The notes: generated by a model not told the origin, from the letters alone. 64,000 bases of DNA from Leidyana gryllorum EB-2025a (GCA_048772705.1 JBLWGC010000180.1:62001-126000), one strand, 5' to 3'. Positions 4,205 to 42,768 are shown, counted from the stretch's first letter. Made by a program: numbers and translations.

Positions 4205-4477
4205 GGGGCAGTGAGGTAGGAGTCCTTGGAACAAAGTCACGTACAGTTGGGACAATAGCCATATTCCACGTCTGTGTTAGTCGTATCACGATCCCAACTC
4301 AACCAAAAAGGGGCAATTGCTCAATGAGGAGATGGTTTGGCTGTGTTTGAGATCAAGTTATAGAGTCATTGAACAATGCCTTGAGTGGTCTGACACAACA
4401 AAGGAGGCAATGTTCAGATTAAAAGGGAACATCATTGAAGTAACACACAAATTCTATCTTGAAAGTCACGTAATCTC

Positions 4478-7400
4478 TCAAACAGAGGCCGTCGTGGCCA
4501 TCGTCATCGTTGCTTGCCGACTCGGGCCAGCGGTGGATGTGCGGGATGTACTCGAAGCAGTGGTGGTCGGTGTCATCTCGCCAGTGGAGGTCTTCTCACT
4601 CATGGAAAATGTGGGTTGACGAGTGGGGATGTAAGTGGTGGATTGAGTTATAGTGGTGTCTTCCGTAGTCTCTGCACCACTGTATTCCGTTTCATCCGTT
4701 GAAACAGTACGGGTGTTCTGGGTGCTACCAGCCCCCGTTATGGTAACCTCTGGGTCCGTTACAACAGTCTCCGTTCCTTGCGGTTGTAGAGTGGTAGCCT
4801 CCAAGACTGTAGTCTCAGTCACCGAGATCTGAGTACTGTCAGCATCCGTAACCGACACTTCTGGCTCTGTCACTGTTGTCTCGCTCGCCTGAGGCTCAGC
4901 TGTAGTCTTTTCCTCCGAGGCGATGGTAGTGTCAGCGGCACTTGTACTCTCGATGGGGCTGGATACCGCTGTCGTCTCACCAAATAGGGTAGTTTCCGTC
5001 GCTGCTGTCGATCCAAGTTCTGCGGTAGTCTCGGGGAAGCTGGTGGCCTCAGGTTCGGTCACCACAGTCTCAGTGCCTTGGGGCTCGACTGTTGTCGTCT
5101 CGCCGTTGGTGATTGTTCCTGACATCGTGGCATCAGACGGAGAAAGAGTCTCGGGAGCAGTGGTTTCGCCAGCTGAAGTTGTCTCGGCAGCTGAAGTTGA
5201 TTCACCAGGAGCAGTAGTCTCGGCAGCGGGAGTTGATTCAGCCGGAGCGGTGGTCTCGGCAGCTGAAGTTGATTCAGCCGGAGCGGTGGTCTCGGCAGCT
5301 GGAGTTGATTCACCAGGAGCGGTAGTTTCGGCAGCTGAAGTTGATTCACCAGGAGCTGTGGTTTCGCCCGCGGAGGTGGTTTCACCCGGACCAGTGGTCT
5401 CGCCAGCGGAAGTGGATTCACCAGGAGCAGTGGTCTCGCCAGCGGAGGTCGATTCACCCGGAGCAGTGGTTTCAGCAGCTGAAGTTGATTCACCAGGAGC
5501 TGTGGTTTCGCCCGCGGAGGTGGCTTCACCCGGACCAGTCGTCTCGCCAGCTGAGGTTGATTCACCAGGAGCAGTGGTCTCGGGCTCGGTCAAGGCACTT
5601 TCACTTCCTTGAGGCTCAACGGTGGTCGTCTCCCCCTCTGTACTGCCGTTCGACATGGTAGAGTCACCAGGAGCCGTGGTCTCGCCTCCCGAGGTTGATT
5701 CAGCAGGACCAGTGGTCTCGCCTGCCGAGGTAGATTCACCAGAAGCACTGGTTTCGCCCACAGTGGTTTCTGGTTGAGTCACTACGCTTTCAGTTCCTTG
5801 AGGCTCCACAGTTGTCGTCTCAGGCTCTGTAGTCTGGCCCGAAATGGTTGTCTCGCCAGGAACGGTAGATTCACCAGGAGGAGTGGTTTCGCCTTCCGAA
5901 GTTGATTCAGCAGGACCAGTGGTTTCGCCTGCCGAGGTAGATTCACCAGGAGCAGTGGTCTCGCCTTCCGAAGTCGATTCACCAGGAGCAGTGGTCTCGC
6001 CTCCCGAGGTTGATTCACCAGGAGCAGTGGTCTCGCCTTCCGAGGTAGATTCACCAGGAGCAGTGGTCTCGCCTTCCGAAGTCGATTCACCAGGAGCAGT
6101 GGTCTCGCCCACAGTGGTCTCTGGTTGAGTCACTACGCTTTCAGTTCCTTGAGGCTCCACAGTTGTCGTCTCAGGCTCTGTAGTCGGGCCCGACATGGTT
6201 GTCTCGCCAGAAACGGTAGATTCACCAGGAGCGGTGGTCTCTCCACCTGAGGTTGATTCACCAAGAGCAGTAGTCTCGCCGGCCATGGTGGTCTCACCAG
6301 GAGCAGTGGTCTCGCCTGCCGAGGTTGATTCACCAAGAGCAGTAGTCTCGCCGGACATGGTGGTCTCACCAGGAGCAGTGGTCTCTGGTTCAGTCACCAC
6401 GCTTTCAGTTCCTTGAGGCTCCACAGTGGTTGTCTCGTGCTCTGTAGTCTCGCCGGAAATGGTGGTTTCACCCGGAGCGCTGGTCTCGCCGGAAATGGTA
6501 GATTCACCAGGAGCAGTGGTTTCGCCCACAGTGGTCTCTGGTTGAGTCCCTACGCTTTCAGTTCCTTGAGGCTCCACAGTTGTCGTCTCAGGCTCTGTAG
6601 TCGGGCCCGACATGGTTGTCTCGCCAGAAACGGTAGATTCACCAGGAGCGGTGGTCTCTCCAGCTGAGGTTGATTCACCAAGAGCAGTAGTCTCGCCGGA
6701 CATGGTGGTCTCACCAGGAGCAGTGGTCTCTGGTTCAGTCACCACGCTTTCAGTTCCTTGAGGCTCCACAGTGGTTGTCTCGTGCTCTGTAGTCTCGCCG
6801 GACATGGTGGTTTCACCCGGAGCGCTGGTCTCGCCGGAAATGGTAGATTCACCAGGAGCGGTGGTCTCGCCGGAGATGGTAGATTCACCAGGAGCAGTGC
6901 TCTCGCCCGGCATAGTGGTCTCACCAGGAGCAGTGGTCTCTGGTTCAGTCATCACGCTTTCAGTTCCTTGAGGCTCTACAGTGGTTGTCTCGGGCTCTGT
7001 CGTCTCACCCAACATGGTAGATTCACCAGGAGCGGTGATCTCGCCGGAGATGGTAGATTCACCAGGAGCAGTGGTCTCGCCCGACATGGTGGTCTCGCCC
7101 GACATGGTGGTCTCGCCCGACATGGTGGTCTCGCCCGACATGGTGGTCTCACCAGGAGCAGTTGTCTCACCAGGAGCAGTGGTCTCTGGTTCAGTCACTA
7201 CGCTCTCTGTTCCTTGAGGCTCCACAGTGGTCGTCGCGGCCTCTGTAGTCTCGCCGGAGATGGTAGACTCACCAGGAGCGGTGGTCTCGCCGGAGATGGT
7301 AGATTCACCAGGAGCAGTGGTGTCGCCCGACATGGTGGTCTCACCAGGAGCAGTGGTCTCACCGGAAACAGTGGTCTCACCCACAGTCGTCTCTGGTTCA

Positions 7401-10400
7401 GTCACTACGCTGTCAGTTCCTTGAGGCTCCACAGTGGTCGTCTCGGGCTCTGTAGTCTCGCCCGACATGGTAGATTCACCAGGAGCGGTGGTCTCGCCGG
7501 AGATGGTAGACTCACCAGGAGCAGTGTTCTCGCCCGACATGGTAGATTCACCAGGAGCGGTGGTCTCGCCGGAGATGGTAGATTCACCAGGAGCAGTGGT
7601 CTCGCCGGAGATGGTAGACTCACCAGGAGCAGTGTTCTCGCCGGAGATGGTCGACTCACCAGGAGCAGTGGTCTCGCCGGAGATGGTAGACTCACCAGGA
7701 GTAGTGGTCTCACCGGAAACGGTAGATTCACCAGGAGCAGTGGTCTCATCCACAGTGGTCTCTGGTTCAGTCACTACGCTCTCTGTCCCTTGAGGCTCTA
7801 CAGTGGTCGTCTCAGGCTCCGTAGTCTCGCCCGATATGGTAGATTCACCAGGAGCGGTGGTCTCGCCGGAGAGTGTTGATTCACCAGGAGCAGTGGTCTC
7901 GCCCGACACGGTGGTCTCACCAGGAGCAGTGGTCTCACCGGAAACGGTAGATTCACCAGGAGCAGTGGTCTCGCCCGACACGGTGGTCTCACCAGGAGCA
8001 GTGGTCTCACCCACAGTGGTCTCTGGTTCAGTCACTACGCTCTCTGTTCCCTGAGGCTCCACAGTGGTCGTCTCGAGCTCCGTAGTCTCGCCCGACATGG
8101 TAGATTCACCAGGAGCGGTGGTCTCGCCAGAGACTGTAGATTCACCAGGAGCAGTGGTGTCGCCGGAGATGGTAGATTCACCAGGAGCGGTGGTCTCGCC
8201 AGAGACGGTAGATTCACCAGGAGCAGTGGTGTCGCCGGAGATGGTAGATTCACCAGGAGCAGTGGTGTCGCCGGAGATGGTAGATTCACCAGGAGCGGTG
8301 GTCTCGCCGGAGACGGTAGACTCACCAGGAGCAGTGGTCTCGCCCACAGTGGTCTCTGGTTCAGTCACTACGCTGTCAGTTCCTTGAGGCTCCACAGTGG
8401 TTGTCTCGGGCTCAGTAGTATCGCCCGACATAGTAGATTCACCAGGAGCAGTGGTCTCGCCTGAGATGGTAGATTCACCAGGAGCAGTGGTCTCGCCGGA
8501 GAGGGTAGATTCACCAGGAGCAGTGGTCTCGCCCGACACGGTGGTCTCTCCAGGAGCAGTGGTCTCATCGGAAACGGTAGATTCACCAGGAGCAGTGGTC
8601 TCAGCCACAGTGGTCTCAGCCACAGTGGTCTCTGGTTCAGTCACTACGCTCTCTGTCCCTTGAGGCTCTACAGTGGTCGTCTCGGGCTCCGTAGTCTCGC
8701 CCGATATGGTAGATTCACCAGGAGCGGTGGTCTCGCCGGAGAGTGTTGATTCACCAGGAGCAGTGGTCTCGCCCGACACGGTGGTCTCACCAGGAGCGGT
8801 GGTCTCGCCGGAGAGTGTTGATTCACCAGGAGCAGTGGTCTCGCCCGACACGGTGGTCTCACCAGGAGCAGTGGTCTCACCGGAAACGGTAGATTCACCA
8901 GGAGCAGTGGTCTCGCCCGAAACGTTGGTCTCACCAGGAGCAGTGGTCTCACCCACAGTGGTCTCTGGTTCAGTCACTACGCTCTCTGTTCCCTGAGGCT
9001 CCACAGTGGTCGTCTCGGGCTCCGTAGTCTCGCCCGACATGGTAGATTCACCAGGAGCGGTGGTCTCGCCAGAGACTGTAGATTCACCAGGAGCAGTGGT
9101 GTCGCCGGAGATGGTAGATTCACCAGGAGCGGTGGTCTCGCCAGAGACGGTAGATTCGCCAGGAGCAGTGGTGTCGCCGGAGATGGTAGATTCACCAGGA
9201 GCGGTGGTCTCGCCAGAGACGGTAGATTCACCAGGAGCAGTGGTGTCGCCGGAGATGGTAGATTCACCAGGAGCGGTGGTCTCGCCGGAGACGGTAGACT
9301 CACCAGGAGCAGTGGTCTCGCCCACAGTGGTCTCTGGTTCAGTCACTACGCTGTCAGTTCCTTGAGGCTCCACAGTGGTTGTCTCGGGCTCAGTAGTATC
9401 GCCCGACATAGTAGATTCACCAGGAGCAGTGGTCTCGCCTGAGATGGTAGATTCACCAGGAGCAGTGGTCTCGCCGGAGAGGGTAGATTCACCAGGAGCA
9501 GTGGTCTCGCCCGACACGGTGGTCTCTCCAGGAGCAGTGGTCTCATCGGAAACGGTAGATTCACCAGAAGCAGTGGTCTCATCCACAGTGGTCTCTGGTT
9601 CAGTCACTACGCTCTCTGTCCCTTGAGGCTCTACAGTGGTCGTCTCGGGCTCCGTAGTCTCGCCCGATATGGTAGATTCACCAGGAGCCGTGGTCTCGCC
9701 GGAGAGTGTTGATTCACCAGGAGCAGTGGTCTCGCCCGACACGGTGGTCTCACCAGGAGCAGTGGTCTCACCGGAAACGGTAGATTCACCAGGAGCAGTG
9801 GTCTCGCCCGACACGGTGGTCTCACCAGGAGCAGTGGTCTCACCCACAGTGGTCTCTGGTTCAGTCACTACGCTCTCTGTTCCCTGAGGCTCCACAGTGG
9901 TCGTCTCGGGCTCCGTAGTCTCGCCCGACATGGTAGATTCACCAGGAGCGGTGGTCTCGCCAGAGACGGTAGATTCACCAGGAGCAGTGGTGTCGCCGGA
10001 GATGGTAGATTCACCAGGAGCGGTGGTCTCGCCAGAGACGGTAGATTCACCAGGAGCAGTGGTGTCGCCGGAGATGGTAGATTCACCAGGAGCGGTGGTC
10101 TCGCCGGAGACGGTAGACTCACCAGGAGCAGTGGTCTCGCCCACAGTGGTCTCTGGTTCAGTCACTACGCTGTCAGTTCCTTGAGGCTCCACAGTGGTCG
10201 TCTCGGGCTCCGTAGTCTCGCCCGACATGGTAGATTCACCAGGAGCGGTGGTCTCGCCAGAGATGGTAGATTCACCAGGAGCGGTGGTGTCGCCGGAGAT
10301 GGTAGATTCACCAGGAGCGGTGGTCTCGCCAGAGACGGTAGATTCACCAGGAGCAGTGGTGTCGCCGGAGATGGTAGATTCACCAGGAGCGGTGGTCTCG

Positions 10401-35837: not shown

Positions 35838-38800
35838 ATGATGAGTCGGGTGAGGAATCGGTCCATTGGTGGCTCTTCGGACAGCGAAGCCCCACCCACT
35901 GATACCTACGAAGTTGAGGAGTTGCGGGATTACCGCCGTCGTAATGGAGAAGTGAGTTATTCAATGTCTGCTGGTCAATCATGGACCACAGGATTTTTTT
36001 CTCATCAAATGGAAAGGATATGGGGAGGAAGAATGTACTTGGGAACCGAGGGTGAGATTAAGGAGTGTCTTCAGTTGTGTATACAGAGATTCGCAGAGCA
36101 ATCTTGGTTCCGATTTGAACGGGCAGATAGAAAAAGTAATTGAAGCTAAGCGGGCGACCAAGGCTGGCCGAAGTCCTAAACGCTCTCGTCTCGTACTCTC
36201 CAGTGATGAAGCTTCGGGTTCGGAAACACCTCAAGATCGCAAAGTCCGCCGTACAGATAGCGCAGAAGGTGACGTGTCGACAATCGATGAGGGCAATCTC
36301 TTACCGAGGCTGCTCAACAACAAGGTTGCTCGCACCGAGGGAGTGGAATTAAGCAGGTCGATCAGTGATGATGAAACTAATGAAATCACGACTAATTCGC
36401 CGAAACGCATCACTCTCTTTGACATCAACCGGTGCGCAACACCTTCGTCGCCGGACGGAACCGGTGGAGGAGGATATGAGGCTGCAACGCAAGACGACGG
36501 GCAACACGACAAGCCCTCCGACGAGCAATTACCTGATGGAGCTTTGTCTCCCAGTGGTTCTGCCCTACCAGATGTCAGCCCACTCAGCCCGTCTCAGATC
36601 ACTGTTGACAAAGCGGATCCCACCTCACCATCTACCTCCACGAATCCCGGCGGCGCAACACCGGTTGGAAGTGACGCACAGACAAGCACCGCGCCCCACT
36701 CTGCCCGCACAGTCGACACTGTGGACACAGGAATCATGTCCGACACTTCGACAAGCGATCAGAGGTCACACCAGCAGCATGTCTCTGGACCGATGGAGAC
36801 ATCGGTAATGTCCGATGGCGAGCAAAGTAAAGAAAACGGAGACAAGATAAATGTGCTAGACATCGACTCCTCTAACCCCCCATCTGACATAGAAGTGTCA
36901 CGTGTAGTCCTCAAGGTCTCCTCAAGCTCGATGGACATGACCGGCCCTGGAGTGCAGGCTGGTCTCGAAGAGGTTGATCTTCAACCTCAATCATCTTTGC
37001 CAAGTGTCACGGGCGACAGCGTTGATCTTCCCACTCCCGCCCAGTCGTGTGCAGAGCAGCCAGATCGCGTGGAGGCCCGGCCGCCGAGTAGAGGAAGAGG
37101 GAGTAAGACTGCAGCAGCCAAAACAAGGCCTAGTGCGGGATCAGCACGTGGCCAACCTAGGTCTAGAAACGCGGCATCCAAATCTGGCCCTCGGACCACC
37201 AAGTCCGCCAAATCAGCAAGCACAAAGGATGACACGCTTGCCCCGTCACCGCCACCGCCACCCCAAAGGTCGGGGAACGACACCTCTGACATCTCCGTCG
37301 GCTTGTCACACGAAGTTCCATTTGTGTCCCCCCCTACCTCTACTGGAATGATGCGAACACCATCTCGATTCCTGCCAAGTGGGGCTGGGGTCTTACCCGC
37401 CCTCTCTACTCCCATCGGCTACCCACCAGCCATCGATTGTTCCATCAACGGATTGTATCCTCCTGGACAATGGCCCCAGCGGTACTCCTCACCCCCCTTG
37501 ACGGCTGCCTCGCAGCTGCCCCCAGCCGGACCCTTCCGAGTTGAATATATTGGGGAGCCTCCTCAACGCGGCTCGACTGGTCTGTGGGTTTTGCTAAGAT
37601 CCAACGAGTAAGCATTTTAGTTTGAAGAAGACACTTCACAATCCTTTGTTTCAGCGGTTCGGAACGTTACATACCCATTCACGAGGCCAGAAGAGATTTT
37701 CCTCGCGAGCTGTGCGATTATTTCATTCCTCGCATTCGGTTGCCTTAGTTATAGTTCTAAAGGACCAAAAAATGATCTCGTTTGATCATGAGGGACTTCA
37801 GGTGTCCCAAGTACCCAGATTGCTGATTGATGAGCGTGCTCTTAACCTGCGTGACCAAGAGCGCCGTCATGAGGCTCGAGTTGACCATTGTGTGCTGTGC
37901 AATACACTCGGCGGCTTAACTGTGAGGTGTGATTTATGTCTTGATCGGGCTCATGTTTTCTGCCTGTGCATTTTCGCACTTGGAAACCCCGAGGTGCGTA
38001 CAATTTCGAAGTTGCTTGTACATCCTCTTACTGTTTCGCATTAAGTTGAACCATTTTCCTCCCTTCGGCTAACAGGACTTAGATTGGATTGGAGCACGAT
38101 GCCCGCAAGTGGCGGACTGCAAAGATCGATTCAGCGACGACCCAGTCGCGCGCCAAATGTTCAGCGACCTCTATAAGGCTGCTAGAGCTCAAGGAACGGC
38201 AATGGTCACCGGGAGTATGCAGACACCCACCTTTCTTTGCCCGGCCTGTGAAGCATCTCGACTGTCAGTGAGCGAGCGTGTGCAGGCGCATCAGCGTGTC
38301 TCATCCTTAATCAGCGGGACTTGGTTGAATGTGTTTATTGTGGCAGCGATCGATATCAAGGATCCATAGTGCGATGTCGCTCGCCTCGCTGCAGTCGAGG
38401 CATTCATGCTTTTTGTGCAACGATCCTGGATCGAAGAATGTATGGTGCCACTTTAGATGACGTAGTGTGGGTACGCGACGACAATGATCTCGAGAAAGAG
38501 TACCCTCTCCGAACATTGGCTGAGTGCTTCGGGGATCCGTCTGTCAATAATGCTGTCGTCTCAAATAACGTCGACTTGGCCTTCGACAGATGCAATCGGT
38601 CGGGCCGATCTCTCGAGGAACAAGGGGGATACTATTGCCCAGAGTGTTGCACAGTGAGTATCACCCGCTATTTTGGCACTCTGACAATGTAGTCTCGAGT
38701 CGTCGACCTGAAATATAAGAGAGACGTCGAAACTATATTTCCCAACAAATGTTTCTACGTGCAAGACGAACTGTCGGACGAGGAACTGGCGCGCTTGCGG

Positions 38801-40952
38801 ATCTGCATGAGAAGTGAGAAAGATCGGATTCGAAGTGATGCATGGGCTGAGCAGTGGATTTGTGGCGACCGTTTCGCAGTTGACGAGGACACAGTGAAGT
38901 GGCAAACGGCGTCAGATCTCAGCCCCACACAAACTCATTCGAATGTTCCCGCGGAAGCGTACCCTTCTCCAGAGCAAAGCAGCGGACTGTCAGCACAGAC
39001 CTTTGCTGTCTGTAGCTTGTGGTTTCGGAGAACCAAACTAAGTGTCAAAGACCGGGAAGAAGTCGATCAGTGGGCGAGAGATGGTGTCTTCCGACCGGAC
39101 GAGGAGGCCCTTGTTCGATGCAACCTATTGCAGTCGGTGGTGCAAGACATTCTTAAGAGGCCTCCCGACCTCCCTTATCGTGAGAATGGTTCCCCCTCGC
39201 AGGGTCTCCCCCTTCAAACTGCGCGGAATGGTCGAGTGCCACGATCGAAACGACGAAAGATGGCGATGCCGGCTCCAAAGAAAGCGTCCCCAACTCTTCC
39301 TTACAACTTCACGCTACCGGGTGTGGGTCTCTTTGCCGCCTCAGCGGGGCCAAGTGAGCCTTCGTGGATGTACGAGACAGACATCGATGCGACTCCTGAG
39401 GTCCTCACCGACACCAGCGAGCAAGATTCCGACGATGTGTATCAAAAGGGTCCTCCCGTTGTCGTAATCAAGCAGTCGAAACGCAGTGGTGCCAGAGCCA
39501 AGGGGCGTTGGAAGGAAAAAGTGGGAATCGGGAAATCGAGCACCACGTCACAGACTCCACCGCTCGAGAATATCACGTCGGTGGCAGACCAATGCAATCA
39601 GTTTCGAAGTAATCGCTCATACGTCAAATGGTTACAAGAGCATCTCAACTTTGAGCTTCTCCAGCGCTATGTGTTCAGCGCGCTCGCTCTCGAGTATGAC
39701 CGAATTGCGTCCTCGGATTTAGCACCAGAGTTCCGAAGTTTATTCGTCGAACACTATGATCCCAAGAGTGTGATGCATCCGCTGTCGCCAAGTTGTCTTG
39801 CGCCTTTGGAGGAAGTGGTCCTCAGCGAGATTGGGTCGTGTGAAGTTCCTGCAAATCGGGGGGCTCGCGCGGGATGGTGTCGTCACGAGAGATTGCGAGA
39901 GATCATGTTGACAGGACGCCATATGCATTATGGAACGCCGCTGAGCCCGCCCGGCATGATGCGAGCTCTATTGCTGTTATATGAGAGGATGGAAGAGTTG
40001 TTTGGACGACATCGATACCGATTACTGGCAAAGAAACCAGAGATGAGTCCGAAAGATGTCGGGCTGCCGACCAGCTGGCTTGACTTGTATGATCTGCACA
40101 AGTGCTGCATCAAAGTGTGGAATGGTCGAGGCCATTTGGCCGAGATAGTGGACGGGGCACGGTGTGGTGTGCGCACTGTAAGTCACATTACATTGCCCTA
40201 TCATCGTATCTCCTTCCGTTTCAGTTGACTGATGCTGTGGTAGTATTGGAAGACGAGCACCGGGTGTTCTGCGACGACCTCGTTTACCATCCGCTTGTGG
40301 ACTCCACTTTCAATACTACCGAGGACACACTCCGCTTCCAGAAGGACGAGATTACCTTTCGTATATACAAAGTGTTCGCCAGATTTGGATTCCTACCCCC
40401 CATCACGTTGGACAATAATCCCAGGTTTGGCCTCCCAGATACACTTTCTTCATCAGAGAGTTTCAGATTGGGGGTGTATGTGCGAGCGTCTCGGCCCATT
40501 CCTCCCTTCACCATCATTGGGGAATATGTCGGGGTGGTGGAGCCCCAGCGGTGGCATATTTCGAGAAACCTTCAAATCAGCGACTCCGTCTATGTAAGGA
40601 AGCGGGTGGACGTTTCTCTGTCGTCGACGGTGTTCTACAGGATATTGACACAAAGCATAACAGTCGCCACTCTTTATGTATCGTACCCGAGCCGTACACT
40701 AACTTTGGTGAGTCCTTTCCTATCGATATATTTGCGACGTTCACTTCTATTGAAGTGCGCTATATCGCGGGCATCAACAATACACGACAAAGCGATCTGG
40801 AAAAACGCAATGTGGACGCGGCTGCTTTTGTAATCGGGAGGGAGGTGAGGCTCTTTGTTTCAACACTGAAGCATATCAAACAAAATGATATTCTGTATTT
40901 GAACTACAATGCCGGTTCGGAACCACTGTACCCCACAGAAGATTTTGAATAG
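35838..40952 (+). CDS. Chromodomain + two PHD fingers + ATXR5/6/TXR1-type SET domain protein (putative histone lysine methyltransferase)
   Basis: Spliced chromodomain [38 protein letters not shown]. PHD patterns CVLC..CDLC..HVFC..CPAC and CVYC..CRSPRC..HAFC..CPEC. SET: FTIIGEYVGVV..SLCIVPEPYTNFVRYIAGINN..ILYLNYNAG..YPTEDF. Confidence 0.85.
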
Positions 40953-40972
40953 CTATGAAATGTTTTTTGGAC

Positions 40973-41836
40973 ATGAAGTGGGGCTGGCTGGCAGTAAGTT
41001 GTGCGTCGGCAGTACCACTCAGGAGTATTCTGTCATTGGTCAGCTTTCCATGTGAGTCGCCCACGGTAGAGTGTAAGGAACGGTGTCGAAACTGCGAGAT
41101 ACCGGAAGGGTATCACCATCAAGTAGATCGTGTCTGGGAATGTCTCGCCAGGTTCAATATGACGGATTTCGGACATTGTCAGTTCCTGATCGATGCCGTA
41201 GATCATCTGTACGGCAGTTTGTGTTTGGGAATACCGCCTCATGATGGTCGCAGCAAAGCTGGTGGCGAGGACAGCATTCTGTTAGCAGACTCAGGTCAAT
41301 CGCGGGTGGATCTCAATTCAGCTGACGATGTTATCTACCGACTGGACTATCCTCCCTTTATCGAGACTGAGGTGAGAATGACTACGCGGATTGGTGTGGT
41401 GCACGAGACAAAAATTACATTGAACTGGGAATGTGAAGATGAAGACTCTGGAATCGACTTAGAATGGTCCGAGGGGATCACAAAAAGCATATTCGAACCT
41501 TCACCGTCGTGTGAGGTGGCAATTGATGATGTCCAGTGGCACCCACTCCCATCGCTTCCGTCGGAGACGCACTTTCAGGAGGAGACCGAACATGTTCACA
41601 ATGATCTTTTCAACTTGACCGATTGGGCGGCCGGGAAAGCTGCTTTTATCGGGGTACAAGCACTTGCGCTGCAAATCAGAGTCAAGAACCCCGATAAATG
41701 TCACGTTGTCTCTGTCGGTAGTATCATGTCAATATATCATCAGTCGGTGGTAGATCCCAAGAGCCTAAATGGCTTCGTGGGCGACCGACATTTTTCCTCT
41801 TTCGGTTTACTTTTGCTCTTGAACCTACTTTGGTGA
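40973..41836 (+). CDS. Cys-rich secreted, probably GPI-anchored surface protein, paralog A (alternative start 40955)
   Basis: Signal-like MKWGWLAVSCASA, 10 spaced Cys in the mature region, hydrophobic C-terminus FGLLLLLNLLW; intronless. Confidence 0.65.
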   Translation: MKWGWLAVSCASAVPLRSILSLVSFPCESPTVECKERCRNCEIPEGYHHQVDRVWECLARFNMTDFGHCQFLIDAVDHLYGSLCLGIPPHDGRSKAGGEDSILLADSGQSRVDLNSADDVIYRLDYPPFIETEVRMTTRIGVVHETKITLNWECEDEDSGIDLEWSEGITKSIFEPSPSCEVAIDDVQWHPLPSLPSETHFQEETEHVHNDLFNLTDWAAGKAAFIGVQALALQIRVKNPDKCHVVSVGSIMSIYHQSVVDPKSLNGFVGDRHFSSFGLLLLLNLLW

Positions 41837-42768
41837 TGTTCTCGCGTATTGTGACCCTCAGATTATTGGCTTCTTGTGCGGCTCTTCTCGTCACCCGAGA
41901 TGACACTATTTCATTTTCCTGCAAATCTCCGTCTGCAAGGTGCCAGCAGGCCTGCGAAGTAGAATGTGGCATGCGATCTCGCGGAATGACAACTCTGGAC
42001 GGCCTTGTTGAATGCCTCGAGGCCATGTCCCGGGCTCCGTTTTACGGATGTGAATTCGCTGTTGAGGCGACAATGACGTACAAACTTCTGATGTGTCCAG
42101 GGAATCGTGACGGATCTCTACGTCTTAAAATACGGAGTGAGACCTATTCTGAAGTGGACTATGTCATTCCTGACCGCAATGAACTGCACTCATTCCTGGT
42201 GTGGGTTGAAACAGGATATTGCAGCAAAGATGTTTCACCCGTTATCGATCTTGCCGTTGAGAAGGGAAACCAGGTTACTCAAGAAACGCTACCTGTATGG
42301 CAGCGGAGGGCACCTCAACATCTGGCGTCGTTCAGTGGAGAGGCGACAGAGCTTGAGGCGAAATACTCGACCTCGCTGGAGTTAGGACCTTCTCCTCTCG
42401 TGATTGGAAGTACCGGGATGGCTAGTATTCAAGGGACAGACGATCCACCACTAAACGATGCGCTGGAGGCTGGGTGTTCTGCCGCCACTGTGACTCCGTT
42501 CAACAAAGTGGAGCCGGAAGACCTCATATTCACCTACCCGACAGGGATGGTGCTCAATGTCACTTCATGGGCTCAATCACTCACAGAGCCGCGAGTGGCC
42601 ATCCCCACACTGTGGGAAATAAGTTCGAGTACTTGCTCCTTCCCCTTAAGAAATCAGTTTTACATCACTGCGGACCAAACCGCTTATATACGTATGGGCG
42701 CGACCGACAGCGCCCCCGCAGCTCTCGCATTGGGGGTCACGGCACTGCTGGTGTCCGCTTTATATTAG
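41836..42768 (+). CDS. Cys-rich secreted, probably GPI-anchored surface protein, paralog B
   Basis: Signal-like MFSRIVTLRLLASCAA, the same Cys spacing as paralog A, C-terminus DSAPAALALGVTALLVSALY. Confidence 0.7.
   Translation: MFSRIVTLRLLASCAALLVTRDDTISFSCKSPSARCQQACEVECGMRSRGMTTLDGLVECLEAMSRAPFYGCEFAVEATMTYKLLMCPGNRDGSLRLKIRSETYSEVDYVIPDRNELHSFLVWVETGYCSKDVSPVIDLAVEKGNQVTQETLPVWQRRAPQHLASFSGEATELEAKYSTSLELGPSPLVIGSTGMASIQGTDDPPLNDALEAGCSAATVTPFNKVEPEDLIFTYPTGMVLNVTSWAQSLTEPRVAIPTLWEISSSTCSFPLRNQFYITADQTAYIRMGATDSAPAALALGVTALLVSALY

Follow-up and report, generated by a model that had tools for sequence, protein, structure and literature searches.

An ATXR5/6-class PHD-PHD-SET gene and its HP1-like neighbour, probably separate genes, in the gregarine Leidyana gryllorum

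The window analyzed here is a stretch of 64,000 nucleotides (nt) from Leidyana gryllorum EB-2025a (GCA_048772705.1 JBLWGC010000180.1:62001-126000), and all positions are counted from its first letter. The region examined within it, 35838-40952 on the plus strand with approximately 50% G+C, probably holds two co-oriented and tightly packed genes and not one fusion: gene 1, which codes for an HP1-like chromodomain protein, and then gene 2, which codes for a PHD-PHD-SET protein of the ATXR5/6 class. The original prediction, made from the sequence alone, had taken the whole region as a single coding unit, whose product would both read and write H3K27 methylation in one polypeptide. This more striking claim does not hold. 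What remains is a gregarine member of the ATXR5/6 type with variant features, namely two PHD fingers, no PIP (PCNA-interacting protein) box found and a replaced motif III His. It is a single-copy gene of eight exons, conserved in three other gregarine sequences.

Two genes and the orthologs of the second

Translation and splice models built from coordinates gave two open units, 35838-37748 and 37772-40952 (Table 1). These coordinate-joined models were used for frame checks and for local alignments with the orthologs and with contig L001 (see below), database searches were run exon by exon, and the genome that was scanned comprises 15.5 Mb in 237 contigs. The chromodomain unit starts with the ATG at 35838, and its frame closes at an in-frame TAG (37746-37748) in a last exon of 30 codons. 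This exon follows intron 37608-37654, which has a consensus donor (GTAAGC), a pyrimidine-rich acceptor (TTTGTTTCAG) and a typical length of 47 nt. The ATG at 37772 is the first one in the frame of gene 2 downstream of the stop at 37619-37621, and the residues directly past it (ISFDHEGLQVSQVPRLLIDER) align with those of the orthologs. Since TAG 37746 and ATG 37772, 26 nt apart, are in different frames, stop-codon readthrough cannot fuse the two genes. All seven introns of gene 2 are of the GT..AG type and 39-82 nt long, three of them (40425-40466, 40594-40640 and 40708-40755) lying within the SET domain, and the gene closes with a TAG at 40950-40952. Packing is similarly tight further downstream, where the next ATG (40955) follows this stop after 2 nt, so that close spacing of co-oriented genes is the rule here. 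The chromodomain-PHD-PHD-SET fusion is thus most likely artificial, the product of joining two closely spaced genes, and in a genome as compact as this one same-strand neighbours about 20 nt apart should not be merged without evidence. As to the neighbours themselves, ATG 40955 opens a 293-amino-acid (aa) open reading frame (ORF) with a signal-peptide-like start, which overlaps the start of a similar 312-aa ORF (41830-42768), and these two ORFs (window 40950-42768) look like paralogous secreted or surface proteins arranged head to tail.

An exhaustive search of 1.84 billion representatives with the 492-aa exon of gene 2 as query gave three relatives, all of which match the conserved middle region of the protein. 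By cluster look-up, P0001 and P0004 come from the transcriptome of Blabericola migrator (EukProt) and P0002 from Gregarina sp. Poly1, and P0003 is an ORF on L001, a Logan contig of 26.9 kb. Looking up contigs for P0001 and P0002 gave no record. Going by these relatives, the window belongs to a eugregarine-like apicomplexan. Word-index protein searches, which are length-windowed and need shared 5-mers, found no match with the 492-aa exon nor with the SET region of P0004. In the genome, the full-length transcript-derived ortholog P0004 (919 aa; P0002 has 829 aa) has matches at this locus alone, one exon after another. It aligns with the gene 2 model from end to end, the identity being 35% over the 846 columns as a whole and 47-64% within the SET exons, and the alignment is continuous through all seven junctions, which confirms the splicing of the SET domain.

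The orthologs are also informative about the upstream boundary. Their starts coincide with the counterpart of ATG 37772 or lie a short way upstream of it, with the N-termini of P0004 and P0002 reaching only about 60 and about 130 residues, respectively, upstream of the conserved LLIDER motif. Residues 1-57 of P0004 have no match upstream in the genome, and a Pfam scan of P0004 and P0002 gave PHD-like matches and no Chromo match. On L001 the ortholog starts with an ATG at 5490 which has an in-frame stop upstream of it, and a 425-aa ORF on the minus strand (the 4206-5490 region, edge at 5483) abuts this start, with its own signal-peptide-like start 6 nt from the ATG. These two L001 ORFs have the appearance of divergent genes with almost no spacer. 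Local tblastn of the gene 1 model against L001 found nothing. By these searches, the three orthologs (Blabericola, Gregarina sp. Poly1 and L001) are without any chromodomain, and the adjacency of gene 1 and gene 2 is not conserved in the relative represented by L001. Judging by the gene structure and by these orthologs, the chromodomain and the SET domain probably lie on separate transcripts. We observed in addition that the L001 ortholog (7829-8310) is without two of the window's SET introns, those after NNPR and after TNF, and therefore intron positions differ between related species.

Table 1. Features of the examined region (window coordinates)
Feature	Position	Strand	Remarks
Gene 1, HP1-like chromodomain protein, 592 aa	35838..37748	+	Stop-free spliced model ending with TAG 37746-37748
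Gene 1 exons	35838-35951, 35992-36051, 36097-37607, 37655-37748	+	Spliced model
Gene 1 introns	35952-35991, 36052-36096, 37608-37654	+	40 nt (GTGAGT..CACAG); 45 nt (in frame, optional); 47 nt
Chromodomain	35904..36150	+	Split by the 40-nt intron; Pfam Chromo, translation, genome Chromo scan
C-terminal domain of gene 1	37528..37748	+	Split by the 47-nt intron 37608-37654, closed by TAG; chromoshadow-like by eye
Spacer, 23 nt, gene 1 stop to gene 2 start	37749..37771	+	Sequence reading
Gene 2, PHD-PHD-SET protein, 942 aa	37772..40952	+	Stop-free spliced model; end-to-end alignment with P0004
Gene 2 exons	37772-37993, 38076-38267, 38315-38653, 38693-40177, 40225-40424, 40467-40593, 40641-40707, 40756-40952	+	
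PHD-type finger 1, C4HC3 (CVLC ... RCDLC ... H..C ... CPAC), long insert	37886..38249	+	Spans the 82-nt intron 37994-38075
PHD-type finger 2 (CVYC ... C....C ... H..C ... CPEC), long insert	38327..38650	+	Pfam and ortholog pattern
Conserved middle region (WLQEHLNF ... LLLLYERMEEL)	39629..40000	+	Sole part of the 492-aa exon that finds relatives
nSET+SET domain, ATXR5/6-type, four exons	40225..40952	+	PDB searches, ESM Atlas, genome scan

The SET domain and the PHD fingers of gene 2

That the SET domain of gene 2 belongs to the ATXR5/6/TXR1 class is well supported by several searches of its sequence. The last exon alone (64 aa) matched only ATXR5 and ATXR6 chains in the PDB (8.5e-5) and was aligned to their C-termini, with RYIAGINN and LYPTEDFE facing RFISGINNH and EYPTQHF of ATXR5. 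Residues 700-919 of P0004 likewise matched only ATXR5/6 chains, at 6.6e-17 and over ATXR5 residues 42-228 of 229. Profile A1, in which the four SET exons of the window are combined with P0004 and the exons of L001, again found only ATXR5/6 in the PDB (E 1.3e-24); up to E 1 no other SET structure came up. In the ESM Atlas the closest cluster is that of the plant [histone H3]-lysine(27) N-methyltransferase, with a score of 0.96 and 177 shared features. The Pfam SET match, obtained on one SET exon, is weak (E 0.028), and no relative came out of a metagenome scan that had the conserved alignment of the C-terminal part as its query. In the genome profile A1 matched this locus alone, and gene 2 is therefore present in a single copy.

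The motifs of the domain are GEYVGVV, SLCIVPEPYTNF, RYIAGINNT and LNYNAG....LYPTEDFE, after which comes the stop, and the C-terminus is without post-SET cysteines; the stretch LCIVPEPYTNF is also present. Invariant across the three gregarine sequences are RYI.GINN, the Tyr of NYN and LYPT..F. Instead of His, GINN is followed by Thr in gene 2, by Ser in Blabericola and by Ala in L001, and as the His is replaced in all three sequences its replacement is lineage-wide and not a local defect. The canonical PIP box pattern, Q..[ILMV]..[FYWH][FYWL], was found neither in the gene 2 model nor in P0004 and P0002, in a search that did not extend to degenerate or APIM-type (AlkB homologue 2 PCNA-interacting) motifs.

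Both PHD-type fingers have a complete C4HC3 pattern of Cys and His which is kept in P0004 and P0002. Their Pfam matches are weak and below the gathering score, for finger 1 zf-HC5HC2H_2 at 2.3e-4 and PHD at 0.15, and for finger 2 PHD at 1.7e-4 and zf-HC5HC2H at 1.6e-4. On these features the original prediction read the sequence well: the ends of the three SET introns are GT..AG and their splicing is colinear with P0004, the hallmarks R[FY]IxGINN, LxIxP..N and YPTxxF without post-SET cysteines are in place, and so are the Thr for His after GINN, the two PHD fingers, the lack of an obvious PIP box and the class of the SET domain. The middle region, kept in P0004, P0002 and P0003, is the best-conserved part of gene 2 outside of the PHD fingers and SET and is without a Pfam match. 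It comprises about 130 aa, looks helical (WL.EH.NF ... LLLLYER.EEL.GR) and corresponds to residues 524-665 of P0004 and to 7044-7800 of L001.

Gene 2 would, by homology, most likely code for a histone H3 lysine methyltransferase dependent on S-adenosylmethionine (SAM), and its PHD fingers would probably dock on the H3 tail. Monomethylation of K27 is the activity of the family, so the predicted substrate and product are those of its relatives. Another SET family has to be considered at this point. KMTox was described as a clade of SET proteins that is specific to Apicomplexa and set apart by its motif III residues (Sawant et al. 2022, PMC9487757). In the published tree it groups with a Tetrahymena lysine methyltransferase that methylates H3K27, and methylation of H4 and H2A in vitro by TgKMTox is cited (PMC9487757). 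TgKMTox has an HMG domain and CpKMTox (cgd5_2340) has no accessory domain (PMC9487757). Gene 2 and KMTox may be the same family, which is the main caveat on novelty. It is conceivable, and in our opinion unlikely, that gene 2 has the ATXR5/6-type fold without being an H3K27 monomethyltransferase, either as the gregarine member of KMTox, for which H4/H2A methylation is reported in Toxoplasma, or as a catalytically altered reader or scaffold. The loss of the His after NN in all three gregarine sequences, the PIP box not found in gene 2 or its transcript orthologs, and the published properties of KMTox (its unusual motif III, place in the tree and cited substrates) are in accordance with such a possibility, but there is no variation in the NN that binds SAM, in the Tyr of NYN or in YPT..F, and the alignment with ATXR5 runs from end to end. 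The link to KMTox, moreover, comes from published descriptions, and the HMG domain of TgKMTox and the lack of any extra domain in CpKMTox differ from the two PHD fingers of gene 2.

The chromodomain gene upstream

Gene 1 is proposed to code for an HP1-like protein with a caged chromodomain at the N-terminus, a hinge of about 450 residues and a chromoshadow-like domain at the C-terminus. Its chromodomain, with the Y/W/Y cage that had been predicted, is borne out by the Pfam Chromo match of exon 2 (E 9.9e-7) and by a Chromo scan of its own genome, which matched the window at 35995-36063 (E 6.4e-7). The cage residues read from the translation are intact, Y in YEVEE and W and Y in IKWKGY, followed by TWEP. 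The 45-nt intron 36052-36096 is in frame and may be either spliced or retained, the two options differing little in pairwise score (99 versus 96). A frameshift inside the chromodomain was considered and rejected, the reading frame being continuous with or without this intron. A second frame at 36055-36100 (EGEIKECLQLCIQRF...) resembles the C-terminal helix of a chromodomain; a frame change of 1 nt would be needed to reach it, and it meets a stop at about 36141. It may be a coincidence, the trace of an old frameshift or an assembly error. The hinge is basic and of low complexity. The last approximately 55 residues of the protein resemble a chromoshadow domain by eye, which we regard as a lead, and if this reading holds, gene 1 would code for a protein of the HP1 type whose hinge is very long. 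A look-alike search of the ESM Atlas with gene 1 reached a score of only 0.78, and a word-index protein search with its chromodomain end, again length-windowed and dependent on shared 5-mers, gave no match.

Chromodomains are also carried by retroelements, and the genome has about 119 chromodomain matches, mostly in open frames of about 1100-1270 aa clustered on few contigs (e.g. C201, C96, C55, C108, C230). Such clustered long ORFs are what chromovirus-type long terminal repeat (LTR) retroelements would be expected to give. Gene 1 could accordingly be imagined as a chromodomain ORF that has decayed or stems from a retroelement, instead of a functional gene of the HP1 type, in which case its adjacency to gene 2 would be meaningless. 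Most of the 119 matches lie in ORFs of the size typical of chromoviral elements (about 1200 aa), the chromoshadow domain is a by-eye reading, a chromodomain-like alternative frame exists at 36055-36100 and the gene order is not kept on L001. We nevertheless find this explanation improbable, as the spliced ORF of gene 1 has 592 codons, three consensus short introns and no frameshift, as it includes an uninterrupted ORF of 519 codons in DNA with approximately 50% G+C, and as the flanking ORFs present no evident integrase or reverse transcriptase context.

One chromodomain-PHD-PHD-SET polypeptide produced by splicing across 37608-37772, be it the predominant form or an alternative isoform, is highly improbable. 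The two ORFs are co-stranded and separated by only 23 nt, and in-frame joins do exist, but beyond the frame difference that excludes readthrough, each join meets an objection of its own and the three orthologs do without a chromodomain, L001 leaving no room for one. The in-frame candidate intron 37739-37818 was rejected as a fusing intron, since the ortholog alignment of the residues past ATG 37772 means that the DNA there is coding and the intron would delete ortholog-conserved residues. When all in-frame GT-AG pairs were enumerated, a single join with a consensus donor was left, from 37608 (GTAAGC) to the AG at 37695. This acceptor has no pyrimidine tract, and the TTTGTTTCAG acceptor situated 41 nt upstream is a strong competitor. 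The single-polypeptide system for reading and writing H3K27 methylation is thus not supported, in view of the in-frame stop, the new ATG, the chromodomain-less orthologs and the minus-strand neighbour on L001. A minor fused isoform of gene 1 and gene 2 may exist.

We return to the reading of two genes, an HP1-like one and an ATXR5/6-type one, against which several points have to be set. One in-frame splice, the above one from the consensus donor at 37608 to the weak purine-rich acceptor at 37695, could fuse the genes, and the transcript boundaries are those we infer from the sequence. For the putative chromoshadow domain, Pfam and PDB searches with its two short exon halves gave no match, nor did a genome scan with PF01393; the domain is split by intron 37608-37654 and the halves are for that reason too short to score. 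The AlphaFold2 model of the SET region (alignment of 8 rows) had a pLDDT (predicted local distance difference test) of 41 and was unusable. Finally, gene 2 has Thr in place of the His in the NH motif of SET, the relatives having Ser or Ala at this position, and the PIP box was not found by pattern, so activity, product state and replication coupling may differ from those of ATXR5/6.

H3K27 methylation and comparison with known systems

The family substrate motif (ARKS) is present in this organism, because the sequence around K27 in its H3 genes reads KAARKS; past S28 the residues diverge. There are three H3-like loci, L010, L011 and L013 (G000:C104:529801-530160, C230:313710-314075 and C2:267016-267267). 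The two intact H3 genes differ right after K27-S28 (KSATGN in one, KSVSTA in the other), and the third H3-like copy has four in-frame TGA codons. A CXC domain is lacking in gene 2, and no EZH2 chain was among the matches of its SET domain when profile A1 was compared with the PDB. No clear E(z) was found in the genome, the Pre-SET scan being blank and preSET_CXC below the cut-off, neither of which shows absence. The sole preSET_CXC match (G000:C102:59858-59923, minus strand, 22.9 bits) is just below the cut-off and inside an open frame of 1470 aa; it does not adjoin a SET match and is the only E(z)-type hint in the genome.

The Su(z)12 subunit of polycomb repressive complex 2 (PRC2) was reported to be lost at the root of Myzozoa (bioRxiv 10.1101/2021.07.16.452543), and gene 2 is a candidate writer of H3K27 methylation in this group. 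ATXR5/6 were described in all land plants and in Tetrahymena and not in animals, with TXR1 as the only non-plant ortholog (PMC9409234). SET inventories of piroplasms (PMC11346185) and Cryptosporidium (PMC9487757) list no ATXR5/6 class. In our literature search no apicomplexan ATXR5 homolog was described, and no paper was found that pairs ATXR5 with falciparum or Toxoplasma. Because ATXR5/6-type enzymes are, according to reviews, confined to land plants and Tetrahymena, the gregarine ortholog widens the range of the family within alveolates, and it raises the question of whether apicomplexan KMTox is the same family as ATXR5/6/TXR1. Our tentative proposal, for which we would claim somewhat less than even chances, is that gregarines keep a single-copy H3K27 monomethyltransferase of the ATXR5/6/TXR1 type that has two PHD fingers and is without a PIP box and the His of motif III; this writer would be the first of its kind recognized in Apicomplexa and a source of H3K27 methylation independent of PRC2. 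If this is true, the position of the PHD-PHD-SET gene 23 nt downstream of a gene for an HP1-like reader could permit co-expression or a minor fused isoform.

Among the known systems, KMTox and TXR1 were compared by published description only. KMTox, which is nuclear, resembles gene 2 as a SET protein with unusual motif III residues, and by these descriptions it is set apart by its accessory domains: HMG in TgKMTox and none in CpKMTox, against two PHD fingers in gene 2. Gene 1 shares with the HP1 family an N-terminal caged chromodomain, a long basic hinge and a short domain at the C-terminal end of the protein. It differs in that its hinge has about 450 aa, HP1 proteins generally carrying a much shorter one, and in that the resemblance of its C-terminus to a chromoshadow domain was seen by eye only. 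TXR1 of Tetrahymena thermophila, also an alveolate protein, shares its SET class with gene 2, and it has a PIP box and a link to replication. The closest comparison is with ATXR5 and ATXR6, the plant H3.1K27 monomethyltransferases (5VA6, 5VAC, 5VBC, 4O30), with which gene 2 shares an nSET+SET alignment that covers ATXR5 residues 43-228 of 229 and so reaches the C-terminus, the motifs R[FY]I.GINN, L.I.P, NYN/DYN and YPT..F without a Cys-rich post-SET, and PHD-type zinc finger(s) N-terminal to SET. In gene 2, unlike in ATXR5/6, no canonical PIP box was found, and gregarines have Thr, Ser or Ala where ATXR5/6 have His after NN. Gene 2 also has two long-insert PHD-type fingers in place of one and an additional conserved middle region of about 130 aa, and with approximately 940 aa its protein is much longer than the plant enzymes, which have about 350-380 aa.

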